Origin: Vitrella brassicaformis CCMP3155
Taxonomy: Eukaryota; Protista; Chromerida
Assembly: GCA_001179505.1 (NCBI GenBank)
Contig: CDMY01000366.1
Span: 62,001-126,000, forward strand
Length of the DNA: 64,000 nt
Direction of reading: 5' to 3'
The first letter of the stretch is position 1; each line of letters opens with the position of its first letter. The notes beneath the pieces are model-generated. The model made no database searches. It was not told where the DNA came from and saw nothing but the letters and a program-made list of their open reading frames with translations. Both the position numbers and the translations under genes were made by a program. Positions 46,733 through 55,617 of the stretch are shown piece after piece.

Positions 46733-46942
46733 ACAGACACAGAGATGCACTGTCGCTAGTTGTACAGCCGGCTCGCTGGTAGGCAATGAGATGCCGTCCG
46801 TCCCGTCTGTCTGTGTAGAGGGGGCGGAGGGGGGGAGTGCCAGCAGCATCCATGTGCTGTCGATGATGATTTGCTGTGTAGCGGATGGGGGCCTTTGATG
46901 CGTGCAAGAAAAGGCAAGGCCAGGGGGGGGGGGGGGGGGGGG

Positions 46943-47241
46943 NNNNNNNNNNNNNNNNNNNNNNNNNNNNNNNNNNNNNNNNNNNNNNNNNNNNNNNNNN
47001 NNNNNNNNNNNNNNNNNNNNNNNNNNNNNNNNNNNNNNNNNNNNNNNNNNNNNNNNNNNNNNNNNNNNNNNNNNNNNNNNNNNNNNNNNNNNNNNNNNNN
47101 NNNNNNNNNNNNNNNNNNNNNNNNNNNNNNNNNNNNNNNNNNNNNNNNNNNNNNNNNNNNNNNNNNNNNNNNNNNNNNNNNNNNNNNNNNNNNNNNNNNN
47201 NNNNNNNNNNNNNNNNNNNNNNNNNNNNNNNNNNNNNNNNN
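46943..47241. other. assembly gap preceded by poly-G
   Basis: Run of about 300 N after 20 G. Confidence 0.99.
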
Positions 47242-47645
47242 NGGGGGCTGTCAGTTACTCAACTTACTCCCTAGGTGACTTGACCGGCACGGACAGACGG
47301 AGGGATGGATGGATGGATGGGTACGGTACACATTACACAATGGACAGACAGCCTAATTAACTAACTTGCATCCATGTCTGTATGTCTAAAATGTCCCACC
47401 CATCAGCCAGCCAAGCCAGAAACAAACACCGCGCATGGGCTACTGGAAGTGGCTGGTGCTCACGGCGTGTGGGTCGATCTGCCTGGCGGTGTGACCGTTG
47501 CTTTTGATTTTGATTTATTCGACCTACATTGACCGTCGAATAAATCATATTCCTACACAATCTGCCGTTTGCCTTATACGACCATCACAGCACCCATATC
47601 TATCCCGGCGTCCACCCACCCATCACTATCCATACGCATCCCTAG

Positions 47646-50184: not shown

Positions 50185-50635
50185 CAACTGCATTGATCAG
50201 AGGACAGACAGTGATCTGTTCCCTCCTGAGTCGCGAGCTCAGGCTCGCAACGGTAGGAAAGGCTCCTTCTACTGTCCTTGAGCGCGTGTGTTGCTCTTCT
50301 CTTCCTTACAACCACCATTCTAGGCTGCCGAGAGTAGGTGTCAGCACAGCAGTAGCCCGTTCTTTTTTCACTTACCATCGCAAGAAGCGTCTGCAGGGCA
50401 GGAAGGAAGGAAGGAAGGACCTGTTGCCTGGGGCAGGCAGAGCCTTGAGCAAGTGCAGTGGACGTTTGTTTGTTTGTGTCAAGGACTTGCCCACCGCAGG
50501 AGCACTCCACTCACGGCGGTCAGCGACATGCATCACAACAGACCGAGAGGGAGACGATACGCCCCATGCACGTATGGCTGGATTCTTCCTTCTGTGGTTA
50601 ACTGCTTTCAGGTGTTGATGATGCCGCTCTAAGTC

Positions 50636-51040
50636 ATGCTCTATCGATTGCAGCAGCTTGTGAGCATCTTGAGCAAGGCTAACAGCATCCATGGCCGCCT
50701 CACCACCGTCGCCTACGCCCTCTACCTCGCGTATGGCGCGACGTCGTACGTGTACCGGCGATACGAGCGGTGCCAGCGCAAGATCCGACACAAGGACCGG
50801 CATCTCCAGCTGCGGTACATCAAGGAAGAACTGAAGGACGAGATGCAGGGCGTCTATGCACTTGCCCGCTCAAGAATGCGGACGCGCATCGAGTCGGCTC
50901 GGGTGTGCTACCAGACGTCCCGCCAGCTGTGGGCGAGCTGGCGGAGGAGCCGTAAGAAGCGACTGATGAGGGAGCAGCAGCTGGCACAGGCACGCGCCGA
51001 GAGGGGGTGGGAGGAGGGAGGAGAGTGGGTACTGCTATGA
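50636..51040 (+). CDS. small hypothetical protein with one predicted TM segment and a basic helical tail
   Basis: 134-aa ORF with codon-like composition; TVAYALYLAYGATSYVY; divergent from BCAT. Confidence 0.5.
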   Translation: MLYRLQQLVSILSKANSIHGRLTTVAYALYLAYGATSYVYRRYERCQRKIRHKDRHLQLRYIKEELKDEMQGVYALARSRMRTRIESARVCYQTSRQLWASWRRSRKKRLMREQQLAQARAERGWEEGGEWVLL

Positions 51041-52435
51041 GAGAGGGACGAATGGATGGATGGATGGATGGACAGACAGACAGACAGACAGACAGAGACG
51101 TGTACATGACACGATCGATGTGATTGAAGCATGTATGGTATGTATGGTATGCACACGTGGCTGAATGAATGAATCATGACTGTTTGAGAGGTACAATTTA
51201 TTTGTCTGTGCACAGCACACGTGTGTCAAAAGCAGGAAAGGCGGGCGGGCAGAGAAACCGGCCGTTTATGGCCGAGTCGAGTCGAGCCTGCCTTTGCAAT
51301 CGGTGCATTGACGCGTTCGTGTTGTGTCCCCTGCCTCCGTGCCTTGTCTTGTCTGTCTGTCTGTCTGTCGGTCACTCCTCTGACTGTGTACGAACGTACT
51401 TACCAGTGATATGCACTGACTGATACCCAACAAGCCTGCCTGCCTGCCTATCTCTGTCTGTTCATTCATCATTGTATAAATGTATGTCTGTATGCCATGG
51501 CCTTGGCGTGTCAAGTGAGTGGCTTTATGGCGGCTCGGCTTGTGTAGGATAGCTAGATGAACGACCGACTGATGGATTGCCGATGGTCGGTCGGTTTTTG
51601 CAGATGAACGACAGACACATATCTATCTATCTATCTGCGTGCGTGTGCTGCGTGCATGTCTTGATGAATTGCGTCGATCACACATGGACGACTGCAGTGC
51701 CAGCTAAAGGTTCTCATGTCGCCAAACACATCTACGGGCAACCCTGACCCTCACCACTGCGGCCACTTGAGCTGCTTGATCTCTCTCACCACCGGGCGCC
51801 TCTTAGCCCCCGCTGAGATGTATATGTCAGGTCGGTCAAGGTCTCTTCCACCATACACCCACCCCCCACCCACCCACCCACACACATGCATTCAGTACGT
51901 CCCACTCACTGGTAAAAGGATGCTGCACACGAATGAAGGCGCCAAGCAGAGAGAGCGTGCTTGTGTGCTGTGGTGTGCTGTGCTGTGCGATAGACACATA
52001 CACACGTATGTACATGGAACAATGGAGCGAAGAAAACGCGGTCAAACCACTTGTCCAATCACGGCTACACGGGTCGCATCAGTCAATCACGGCAGACAGG
52101 CAAACAGACAGGCACTTAGACAGACAGGACGTACTGCCAGGATCAGCCACGACACGCCAAGCCCTCTCTCGCTTTGTGCACTCCCTTATCCCTCACCATC
52201 GCACTTACAAAGAACGACCCCCTAGGTGCATATGTGCAGTCACTTGATGAAAACACACCAGCCACCCACTTGATGTCATCCACAGCTCCACACGTACGAT
52301 GCTCGTGCTTAAAGACGCACGAGCCCCCTTTACACAGCCATCAACAGAGATATGTACACGACACGCTATACTATGTGTGTGTCCACAAACACCCACACAC
52401 GCACTATCTATGTGACTTGGTGTGTCTAGTAGTAA

Positions 52436-52959
52436 CTACCACTTGTTCTTCTTCCCACGCTTCTTGTTCTTATACCACTTCTTGACCTTGTTCCACTTCT
52501 TCTTGAGCTTCTCATAGAGGCCCAGCCTCCGCTCCGTGGGGCTCGACGACTCCTCCACGGCCTCCACGCCACTGGCCTCATCTTCATCTTCATCTACACA
52601 CACACACACACACACACACATGTGGCCAACACAATCACGTGTGGTTGCGGCAGCGACGGCTGCACACCCACCTGTAGGTGCAGCCGTCGGCTCATCTGGC
52701 CCCGTCACAAGAGCATCAGCCCCTACAAGCAAACAAGCACACAGGAAAGGCGCGTACTTGTGCAGCATGTGGATGAGGTGCAAACACCCATCATGTGTGT
52801 ACCATCGGATGTCACTTCGGTGTCGTCACATTCCCCGCCTCTCAAACGCCGGGCCACTGCGGACGGCGCATCAGCATGAGCAGCCCGCTTCACATCATCA
52901 GCGGAGACCAGTGCGATGCCGAGCAGGCACACCAGCAACGAAAGGGAGAGGGCCTTCAT
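52436..52959 (-). CDS. 121-aa secreted prepropeptide with cationic amphipathic C-terminal peptide (3 exons)
   Basis: Exons 52959-52803, 52722-52672 and 52593-52436, with phase-1 GT-AG introns. Translation: MKALSLSLLVCLLGIALVSA-DDVKRAAHADAPSAVARRLRGGECDDTEVTSDGADALVTGPDEPTAAPTDEDEDEASGVEAVEESSSPTERRL-GLYEKLKKKWNKVKKWYKNKKRGKKNKW. Confidence 0.8.
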
Positions 52960-53525
52960 CGGTCGTGAAGCGGACGATGGGAGGAATTCGAAACGCAGAC
53001 GAGCAGCGGGAAGACGACCAACGACGAGAGCCTTGTTGAAGAGAATAAGTTGGGCAGCGAGAGATGAGAGGCAACCGATGAGAGTGGAGTCGAGGGATGC
53101 TGCAGATGGACAGAAAGGGGGGCGGCCGTTAAGACAGAGGGCAGAGAGACAGGCAGATAGCAGGAGGGCTGTCGTCGCATGGCGAGAGAGGAGAGCGCGA
53201 TCCGCGTGTGCGCAACGGCTGCGAAATATGTAAACGCTCTTGCCGCGACCGACCTGGCATTACACATCAAATGCCTGCAGACCGCAGGTGGGAGCGCTCT
53301 CGGCTGATCTGAACGATGTGGAGTTTGCTTTCTGAAGGGGGAAAGTCGGGCGATTGTCCTGTGGCTCGCTGCCCTTCTGGGAAGCTCCCTGAAACCGCAA
53401 CCGTTCGTGTCTGGGAAGCAGGGAAAAACGACGGACAAACATCGCCGAGGTCCAGCTAGAGCACGGGGGGGACAGCCAAACTCTGACTGAAATCTGACTG
53501 AGATCTGATGACCTGTTCATATGTG

Positions 53526-55617
53526 TGTGCGTTCTCTCTTCGTGTGATGCAGATCTGCTGTGAGGAAAAGGACTGCCTCCGATCCCCTTTGATGGATGTG
53601 TCCAACAACAAGGAGTACCAGAAAGATGAGTCAGACCCGCTGGTGGACGAAGACCGCCCCGTCGATGCAGATGGCCAGCCGCCCCTCATCACCCTTCCTC
53701 TGCCTGTCCCCGTCCCTCCTGAGTGTTTCTTTGGCTCATCGCGGCCGCGTGAGACGCTGCTGGCGCTCCCCTTGGCACAGCAGCACCACTGGCAGAGGCT
53801 ACTGACGTCGTTCCAGGCCTATGGGCGGCACAGTGAGGGCAACCGAGTGGACGTATTGGATGATGGAGATCAGGTGCTGCAGGCCATGCTCGAGGTCAGT
53901 GCAGGCATCCATAGAAAGACATAGATCACGCAATTGATGCATCCATCTCGTCTCTCTGCAATTAACGTTTGCTTGGCTCACTGATGATGCAGGCCATCTG
54001 TGCCGCCCGCACTCGTGTGTGGCTGGAGTCGTACATCTTCGATGGGTCCAAGCTGGCCGAACGGTTCGTGGATGCGCTGGTGGATGCAGCTCACCGGGGC
54101 TGCGACACCCTACTGCTCATCGACTATGTGGGAGCCTTCTCCATCAAGTCGCGGTGGATTGACCGCATGCGCAAGGCCGGTGTGGCTGTCATCGTCTTCA
54201 ATCCCGCACTGCCTGGTGGGGTGGGCCTATCGGTCACATGACGGACGGACGCATCCACCAGCTCCCCTTGTCCAATCAATCGGCTGCAAATCTCCTTCCT
54301 CTCTGTTTGCAGGTCTTGACGGCAGCAAGTCCATCGGCCCCCTGTCCTACCGGGACCACCGCAAGATCCTCATCGCAGACACGACGGCCTTCTGCGGCTC
54401 AATCAACATCTCCGACGATGCCGGCGGGCCCCTGCTGGGCAACTCGCGATTCTACGACGTCCACATGCGGCTGCGGGGCCCCTGCGTGGCCCACCTGGCT
54501 GACGTGCTGCGCGACTCGCTGGCCGAGGCCTTCAGGGATGTGTGGCGGCCGCCCATCGATGTGCCTGAGGAGTATGAGGACGGCGTGTATGTGCAGGTGC
54601 TTGAGTCCAACATCCGGCAGGGGAGGCGGCAAATCATGGACGCGCTCAGCAAGGCCACCAGACAGGTGGGTAGCTGGGTGCAGGGGAGACGATACGAGAC
54701 GAGACGAGGGTTTCTCTCTGATTGATCCTTCCTGTGTGTGTATGTTTTGTTGTCAGGCTCAGCAGTCGATAGAGCTGACGACGTCCTACTTTTATCCGCC
54801 GGGAGTGCTGCGTCGTGCGTTGGTATCGGCGTCGCGTCGTGGCATCCCGATTTCCATCCTGCTGTCGGGCAACTCGGACCTCCTTGGCGATGTCATGGGC
54901 TCAACACACCTGGTCAAGAAATTCTTGGTGAGTCGGGAGCAGCAAGACACACCAGAATCATTCCTTATGTGCGTCCGTCTGGTGTGCACGTGTGTGTGTG
55001 TCAGCGAGTGCCGGGGAACCAGACCCGTGTGCATTTCCTCATGCCGCAGCACATGCACGCCAAACACACTGTGGTCGACGGCGTCTGGAGCTGCGTGGGA
55101 TCCTTTAACTGGGACAGGTACGCACCCATCCCACTCGCCCCTCCATCCATCCATCCATCGGTCTATATAGATCTATCAATCCACCAGGTATTCGGCTCGT
55201 CGGAATTTGGAGGTTGCGGTGTCGATATTCGACGGACAGGTGGCGTCGCAGCTGAGCGCTCTGCACCACCGCAAGGCCCACAACGAAAAGGAGTGCTACG
55301 AGATGACCTGGGAGAGGTGGCAGCGCCAGAGCCCTCTCAAGAAACTCATCTGCTGGTTCGCATACTGCTGCGTCAGGCTCACAGGTAGGTCGGTCGCCAA
55401 AAGGTGCATGGAGGCAGGTAAGGTGCCTCACGGGAACTCTTTCTGTCTGTCTGTCTGTGTGTGTGTGTGTGTGTGTTGACTGACAGGCAAGAATGTGTCG
55501 GATGGCTTGAGCAACACTCGTCAGAAGGCGTTGGTTCGTCGTGCGTTGATCCACACGTACCTGGACGAGCGGGCGGCCAAGAACCTGGCCACGGGCATGA
55601 TGTGGGGCATTCAGTGA
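53526..55617 (+). CDS. cls: bacterial-type cardiolipin synthase / phospholipase D (two HKD motifs); start uncertain
   Basis: GNRVDVLDDGDQ, RVWLESYIF, RDHRKILIAD...GSINI, IELTTSYFYP and HMHAKHTVVD...VGSFNWD..S..RNLE. Confidence 0.88.

Follow-up and report, generated by a model that had tools for sequence, protein, structure and literature searches.

A Vitrella-specific gene family predicted to encode secreted prepropeptides with two conserved Arg-Arg-Leu sites and a fast-evolving cationic tail

The stretch of 64,000 nucleotides of Vitrella brassicaformis CCMP3155 that was analysed here (contig CDMY01000366.1, positions 62,001 to 126,000; referred to as the window) carries on its minus strand, at positions 52959-52436, a gene of three exons with a product of 121 residues. 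This gene belongs to a family of 12 genes, and the reading that we favour, with a probability of roughly 40%, is that the family encodes Vitrella-specific secreted prepropeptides that are cut at two Arg-Arg-Leu (RRL) sites and whose C-terminal tail is most likely a defence peptide. We infer that the predicted signal peptide would bring the protein into the endoplasmic reticulum (ER), where an endopeptidase of the secretory pathway, most likely a protease of the plasmepsin V/ASP5 type encoded on another contig, would cut at both RRL sites. The cuts would strip a leader of 19 residues together with the disordered, acidic propiece, the latter presumably neutralising the basic tail during transport. 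The freed Lys-rich peptide would have its targets on extracellular polyanionic surfaces, where it would most likely serve in defence as a membrane-active or antimicrobial agent.

The deduced protein can be divided into the following parts, given with their coordinates in the window:

52900..52959, minus strand: predicted signal peptide, residues 1-20, cut after V-S-A (sequence features and predicted helix 3-27)
52834..52854, minus strand: site 1, ARRLRGG, residues 36-42 with RRL at 37-39, invariant in 12 of 12 genes
52523..52534, minus strand: site 2, ERRL, with RRL at residues 91-93, directly before the basic tail
52439..52522, minus strand: Lys-rich C-terminal 28-mer with a net charge of +13 (translation; predicted helix 88-118)

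The signal peptide of 20 residues that had been proposed in the initial annotation is consistent with the hydrophobic core at the N-terminus, the residues V-S-A before the predicted cut and the helix comprising residues 3-27 in the AlphaFold2 (AF2) model, the call being made from sequence features only. Translation likewise confirmed both RRL sites, ARRLRG behind the signal (52854-52834) and ERRL immediately before the 28-mer (52534-52523). The RRL of site 1 ends 19 residues past the predicted signal cut and would thus delimit the leader of this length. The segment between the two RRL sites has a net charge of -17, and removal of the signal peptide leaves a protein that is almost neutral, with a net charge of -1. 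Propiece and tail offset each other in every member of the family that was scored (-17/+13, -18/+8, -22/+9, -9/+6 and -5/+4). The predicted product agrees letter for letter with the public protein P0009, an 'unnamed protein product [Vitrella brassicaformis CCMP3155]' that was retrieved by a word search seeded with a paralogue. AF2 models of P0009 and of its relative P0003, which belongs to the second of the two subfamilies described below, consist of a signal helix, a disordered middle part and a C-terminal helix spanning site 2. A plastid transit peptide was rejected from the sequence because the region following the signal peptide is acidic, which is not expected of such a targeting sequence.

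The composition of the gene family was deduced by searching the complete assembly (72.7 Mb, 1064 contigs) in six frames with exon 1, with exon 3 and then with an exon 1 profile. Twelve family genes were found, and the next profile score falls from 92 to 25 bits; weak profile matches on the contigs C305, C613 and C523 were rejected as family members. The paralogue search that the initial annotation had recommended was thus successful, as all 12 genes specify a signal peptide, the invariant ARRLRGG motif, a disordered acidic propiece, the boundary motif [E/D]RR(R)L and a hypervariable cationic tail, and a phase 1 intron after exon 1 is common to all of them. Subfamily 1 includes eight genes, namely the gene in the window, which stands alone on its contig, a cluster of five genes on contig C748 and one gene each on C582 and C738, with 85-88% identity in exon 1. 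Seven of these eight genes encode a Lys-rich stretch followed by Gly/Tyr runs of the G-G-Y type. Subfamily 2 consists of four genes in two tandem pairs, whose exon 1 is 54-57% identical and whose tails are longer, amphipathic and poorer in Lys, with a C-x-x-x-C loop at the end. The respective loci are:

contig C342 at about 49.9 and 52.4 kb and contig C338 at about 108.8 and 111.3 kb, minus strand: subfamily 2 loci (L018-L021), with the ARRLRGG leader kept

C342 and C338 may represent alleles or duplicates of each other. One member of subfamily 2 contains an extra domain of about 45 residues ahead of site 2.

A comparison of the exon 1 profile with 1.84 billion representative proteins yielded only four true relatives along with one spurious repeat protein. 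The four relatives are apparently Vitrella's own, as P0001, P0003 and P0004 match loci found in the assembly, with a source name being recorded for P0001 only. The entries retrieved by a word search with P0001 all came from Vitrella or MMETSP. Within the reach of these searches, the family is an orphan specific to Vitrella. The proteins P0009, P0007 and P0008 bear the UniRef name 'RxLR effector protein', which looks like an automatic, motif-driven label derived from oomycetes rather than evidence of function, and a literature search detected no paper that links Vitrella with RxLR.

The conservation of the two sites supports the proposed processing. The heptad ARRLRGG represents the longest invariant run in exon 1 of the 12 genes. 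Synonymous differences between the genes occur in six of its seven codons without a single replacement, whereas the flanking codons change their amino acid freely, which amounts to purifying selection on the heptad. At site 2, the RRL motif is kept in 12 of 13 modules in the form [E/D]RR(R)L and is replaced by RRGL in the remaining one, so that both RR and R-x-L are present in 13 of 13 modules. The subfamilies 1 and 2 have nothing but [E/D]-R-R-(R)-L in common at this boundary, and this retention of RRL where everything around it differs argues for processing, as does a paralogue with two modules (G000:C748:31264-31994, minus strand; L013, L005 and L008). Its last exon contains tandem units of an acidic spacer, RRL and a Lys/Gly/Tyr peptide and therefore has a polyprotein-like appearance. 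[quoted passage not shown]

As a general signal in the genome, ARRLRGG was rejected, since the 13 other matches to the back-translated motif correspond to the level of a reversed-pattern control and lie in non-secreted frames. A search for back-translated GGGGRRL likewise revealed no overall excess in the genome, with 65 matches against 116 in the control. Three GGGGRRL-coding matches are located 66-69 nucleotides apart on the minus strand of contig C466 (G000:C466:64891-65045).

The conservation of the heptad also has to be considered in terms of a protein that is never cut and acts as a whole, for instance as a small disordered protein of the secretory pathway that would use its acidic block and basic helix to pack granules, form condensates or coat surfaces, with the heptad serving as a sorting or binding motif. 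The seven conserved residues of ARRLRGG exceed what cleavage at RRL requires, the near neutrality of the protein without its signal peptide fits this explanation, and AF2 places site 2 within one continuous helix. However, the repeated spacer and RRL of the two-module paralogue resemble a polyprotein, RRL is the sole feature that the subfamilies share at site 2, and a matching protease is encoded in the genome. We therefore regard an uncut protein as doubtful.

The protease in question was detected by a six-frame search of the genome with the pepsin family, which revealed about a dozen loci. One of them combines the following features of the plasmepsin V/ASP5 type:

G000:C688 at about 132600-133091 (L046:1468-2631:-), minus strand: plasmepsin V/ASP5-type protease gene L046, with a downstream exon at L046:241-861:-

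The L046 locus matches the plasmepsin V structures 4zl4 and 8tyf at an E-value of 4e-39, the next family following at 3e-7, whereas an ordinary pepsin-like locus gave the reverse ranking. The deduced protein contains the motifs DTG and DSG, the flap residues Y-T-E, the conserved Phe-x-x-Gln and a C-terminal membrane helix encoded by the downstream exon, and its alignment includes the Cys-rich segment by which the first catalytic motif is separated from the flap in plasmepsin V. A modelling preprint assigned the salt bridge with the P3 Arg to this flap Glu and to this Gln, and it described the residue before the flap Glu as Ser in ASP5-type enzymes and as Cys in Plasmodium. Both reported Arg-binding residues are kept in Vitrella, and the Thr before the flap Glu is closer to the ASP5 state. 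A protease of the type that the initial annotation had postulated for the maturation of the peptide is thus encoded in this genome. ASP5 is documented to cleave behind RRL at N-terminal as well as C-terminal positions, the next residue being D, L, S or A, and its substrate GRA44 contains two RRL motifs and may be cut at the second of them as well. On these grounds, the C688 protease would be the likeliest enzyme to cut at RRL in the Vitrella family.

Alternatively, a dibasic-specific subtilase might cut after Arg-Arg, in which case the mature peptide would start one residue earlier, from Leu, and no link to plasmepsin V/ASP5 would exist. This possibility concerns only the enzyme and is compatible with either functional reading of the tail. 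Propeptides of animals and fungi are usually cleaved at dibasic sites; RR is present in 13 of 13 modules including the RRGL one, and the genome contains at least 25 subtilase loci. On the other hand, a six-frame search of the assembly G000 gave no match to the kexin/furin P domain PF01483 at E-values up to 0.01, Leu is retained in all but one of the 13 modules and R-x-L in every one, and the position of site 1 agrees with that of RXL, PEXEL and RxLR leaders. Accordingly, we consider cleavage by a subtilase unlikely.

The 28-residue tail contains 13 Lys, one Arg and one Glu, with hydrophobic residues at positions 2, 3, 6, 10, 13, 16, 17 and 28; composition and charge are as initially annotated, with position 28 to be added to the hydrophobic residues. 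AF2 predicts a helix at residues 88-118 of P0009, with the predicted local distance difference test (pLDDT) averaging 67 and 83 in the blocks that cover residues 91-110. The helical hydrophobic moment of the 28-mer is 0.55, compared with 0.33 in shuffled sequences (p about 0.03), and it also exceeds the shuffled sequences in P0001 (p 0.04) and in the tails of subfamily 2 (p 0.007-0.05). Nucleotide identity to the paralogues amounts to 77-96% in the 5' untranslated region (UTR), all exons as far as RRL, the two introns and the initial 200 nucleotides of the 3' UTR, and it drops to 64-71% with large insertions and deletions in the tail. Divergence of the tail above the level of the introns is typical of families of defence and toxin peptides, and repeat slippage may contribute to it. 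A role in defence is favoured because one function must cover both subfamilies, because subfamily 2 resembles classical amphipathic peptides and because the tail evolves fast. The precursor design recognised in the initial annotation is therefore conserved at the level of a 12-gene family, in which the prepro part is conserved and the tail hypervariable, and the antimicrobial activity deduced from it is only one of its readings.

Several observations weigh against the favoured reading. The common tails of subfamily 1, as represented by P0007 and P0008, show no significant amphipathicity (p about 0.5), and the second half of the 28-mer lacks a clean amphipathic pattern; Lys recurs in steps of three from residue 9 to residue 27 (p 0.012), forming a K(X)2K chain rather than a helical pattern. 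A charge of +13 in 28 residues lies beyond the usual range of helical antimicrobial peptides (AMPs). The copy in the window is a truncated variant without the Gly/Tyr tail of the family. No Pfam match above noise was obtained at E-values up to 1, AMP families included, and a search of the ESM Atlas with a subfamily 2 tail gave no match. The confidence of the AF2 models is modest, with a mean pLDDT of 58 and 51. The RRGL of one family member breaks the RRL motif, although R-x-L and RR are retained, and the numerous subtilases could supply a dibasic-specific enzyme.

Some of these observations are shared by a serious rival, which applies especially to the members with Lys/Gly/Tyr tails and which assumes that the peptides are polycations of a wall, matrix or adhesive on the model of the diatom silaffins and cingulins. 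After RXL-type processing, the Lys/Tyr/Gly peptides would be incorporated into the thick wall of the cell or sporangium, or would give it order, by electrostatic assembly with polyanions or by tyrosine cross-linking, and would not kill microbes. The silaffin precursor Sil1p consists of a signal peptide, an RXL motif directly behind it, an acidic domain (residues 20-107) and strongly basic Lys-rich repeats that are bounded by RRIL or RRNL and released by an unknown endopeptidase. The diatom protein Sin1 contains an 'RXL domain' of about 30 residues that directly follows the signal peptide and ends with RRL, and the Lys residues of cingulins are clustered as K(X)2K with Ser/Gly spacers. Besides this similarity in layout, the K(X)2K chain of the 28-mer, the Gly/Tyr-rich endings of seven of the eight subfamily 1 genes and the common tails without significant amphipathicity speak for a structural role. 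Nevertheless, the Vitrella tail is devoid of Ser, its spacers being W, N, V, K, Y, R or G, whereas the Lys clusters of silaffins and cingulins are spaced by Ser and Gly. The tails of subfamily 2 are poor in Lys and resemble amphipathic helices with a disulfide loop. The fast divergence of the tail is more typical of defence or toxin peptides, with the reservation about slippage made above. Vitrella, an alveolate, is not known to silicify, which counts against the silaffin model. Taken together, a role in the wall or matrix appears possible but rather improbable.

The gene in the window is real, spliced and expressed. Its structure is as follows:

52960..53105, minus strand: 5' UTR (minimum extent; record 5 of the run X1 spans 52905-53105)
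52803..52959, minus strand: exon 1, ATG at 52959, 52 codons plus one nucleotide, ending with G before GTAC
52723..52802, minus strand: intron 1, 80 nucleotides, GT..AG, phase 1 (RNA joint 52721/52802)
52672..52722, minus strand: exon 2, 51 nucleotides, part of the acidic propiece (50-letter side at the RNA joint)
52594..52671, minus strand: intron 2, 78 nucleotides, GT..AG, phase 1 (contig arithmetic, P0009 and the paralogue transcript P0006)
52436..52593, minus strand: exon 3 including the stop codon TAG at 52438-52436 (RNA contigs continue past the stop)
51902..52435, minus strand: 3' UTR, about 530 nucleotides (X1 records 3 and 4, X2 records 9 and 10)

Four public sequencing runs were aligned to positions 50400-54400 of the window. 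The runs X1 and X2 are transcriptome-like, with GT..AG joints in neighbouring genes and no intergenic depth, whereas X3 and X8 are DNA-like, with full cover and no joints. RNA depth is zero at 53214-53347 on the upstream side of the gene and at 51740-51873 beyond the 3' UTR. The 80-nucleotide skip at 52721/52802 is present in X1 and X2 and absent from the DNA runs. A contig of 508 letters from X1 maps to 52269-52569 and 52802-52934, with 74 letters in between (301 + 74 + 133). These 74 letters comprise the 50 letters at the joint of intron 1 and a further 24 that equal the part of exon 3 above 52569, which indicates that both introns were removed as predicted; the exon 2/3 junction of this copy is accordingly based on contig-length arithmetic, the public model and the paralogue transcript P0006. 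Intron 2 contains a (GT)12 microsatellite at 52596-52620. The same contig crosses the TAG, and an overlapping contig reaches to about 51902. The onward splicing past the stop codon via a gtagtt donor, which had been named in advance as an outcome that would overturn the annotation, is thus ruled out, since the RNA contigs run straight past the TAG into the 3' UTR without use of this donor. The three-exon model and the 121-residue product of the initial annotation are hence borne out by the spliced RNA of X1 and X2 and by the identical public protein. Loose ends in the RNA runs correspond to transcripts of paralogues with a different tail.

The same region provides the evidence on a further explanation, according to which the copy in the window is a decaying paralogue that is transcribed and has lost the job of the family after a frame-shifting deletion took its Gly/Tyr tail. 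The +1 frame at the 3' end of the gene still encodes the ancestral ending of the family followed by the old stop codon, and the present C-terminus was therefore created by a frame-shifting deletion. Exon 2 is about 30-33 nucleotides shorter than in the paralogues, and the solitary position of the gene away from the C748 cluster is likewise in line with decay. Conversely, the open reading frame is intact, both RRL sites are kept, the spliced RNA contigs of X1 and X2 are 100% identical to the gene, its tail still begins with an amphipathic part, and a very short Gly/Tyr tail is also found in P0001/P0006, another member that is expressed. Decay is in our view very unlikely.

The surroundings of the gene in the window were also inspected. 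A divergent neighbour on the plus strand at 53450-55400 contains a phospholipase D-type HKD-like motif in open frames and has RNA splice joints at 53447/53551, 53892/53991 and 54214/54312. Downstream of the gene, at 50426-51726, RNA contigs cover 50426-51037 and 51104-51726, with a GT..AG joint at 50517/50611. A run of N at about 46930-47260, which appears as X in all frames, marks a gap in the assembly.

Interest in the PEXEL/TEXEL system has centred on its use as a drug target and on its character as a parasitic adaptation. A free-living chromerid, an alga related to the malaria parasites, that carries a gene of the plasmepsin V/ASP5 type with the residues of the Arg-binding pocket, along with an expressed multi-copy family of candidate substrates, makes the question of what this system did before parasitism directly testable. 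Tentatively, and with rather more doubt than confidence, it might be envisaged that cutting at RRL by a plasmepsin V/ASP5-type protease represents an ancestral system, similar to the prohormone convertases, of the free-living ancestors of apicomplexans, perhaps shared with diatom RXL and oomycete RxLR, that the Vitrella family is among its native substrates and releases fast-evolving cationic defence peptides, and that parasites later reused this cleavage for effectors directed at the host. The finding also connects the RXL motif of diatoms, whose protease is unknown, the RxLR motif of oomycetes and the PEXEL/TEXEL motifs of apicomplexans, which are stramenopile and alveolate systems that are usually discussed apart. 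Should the released peptides prove active, they would, as far as the literature search shows, be the first described host-defence-type peptides of chromerids.

The genetic and functional composition of the Vitrella precursors can finally be compared with that of known systems. In fungi, Kex2-processed repeat proteins and precursors of the candidalysin type are small secreted precursors in which dibasic sites free one or several short peptides. The two-module paralogue is similar in this respect, whereas the Vitrella genome yielded no kexin P domain and RR is followed by a conserved Leu. Nematodes and arthropods possess Gly/Tyr-rich antimicrobial peptides, and the G-G-Y-type endings of subfamily 1 resemble them in composition only; the copy in the window has lost this ending.

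The oomycete RxLR effectors, whose RxLR lies behind a signal peptide and no more than about 60 residues from the N-terminus, are matched by R-R-L-R at residues 37-40, located 17 residues past the predicted signal cut and followed by acidic residues. They differ in that Vitrella has no EER motif, no effector or WY-type domain in the Pfam search and no homology to them, the profile relatives being confined to Vitrella. In common with the TEXEL/ASP5 and PEXEL substrates, the Vitrella proteins have a predicted signal peptide for entry into the ER and RRL motifs near the N- and C-terminus, and the genome encodes a protease with the Glu and Gln of the S3 pocket. Unlike the parasites, Vitrella is free-living and has no host cell for export, its products would be tiny peptides rather than dense-granule proteins, and the fifth position of PEXEL differs in its sites. 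The likeness to TEXEL and RxLR noted in the initial annotation consequently holds for RRL and RRLR behind a predicted signal and does not extend to the fifth position of PEXEL or to EER.

Helical AMP prepropeptides of animals, for example those of the dermaseptin or cecropin type, are composed of a signal peptide, an acidic propiece, a basic site and a cationic peptide. The Vitrella precursors share with them the predicted signal, the charge-offsetting acidic propiece and the basic site directly before the cationic peptide, as well as the organisation as a multigene family with a conserved prepro part and a hypervariable mature part. They deviate by the lack of homology to AMP families in Pfam, by the extreme charge of the 28-mer and by the common subfamily 1 tails without significant amphipathicity. 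The resemblance to animal helical AMP precursors that had been put forward at the outset can thus be maintained for the layout and the hypervariable tail, and it is weakened by most of the close paralogues not being significantly amphipathic.

The precursors of diatom silaffins and RXL-domain proteins, which the initial annotation did not mention, share no sequence homology with the Vitrella family. The absence of Ser from the Vitrella tail excludes a phosphoserine chemistry, and the Ser/Gly-spaced Lys clusters are missing; the tails of subfamily 2 are not polycationic, and RRxL trails each repeat of Sil1p, whereas RRL precedes the peptide in Vitrella. The agreement concerns the arrangement of the parts, as in both cases a signal peptide is followed by a short leader ending with RRL or RXL, by an acidic domain and by a Lys-rich peptide with an RRxL boundary and K(X)2K spacing. 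By analogy of their architecture, these diatom precursors appear to be the closest match to the Vitrella family, fitting it as well as the animal AMP precursors do.

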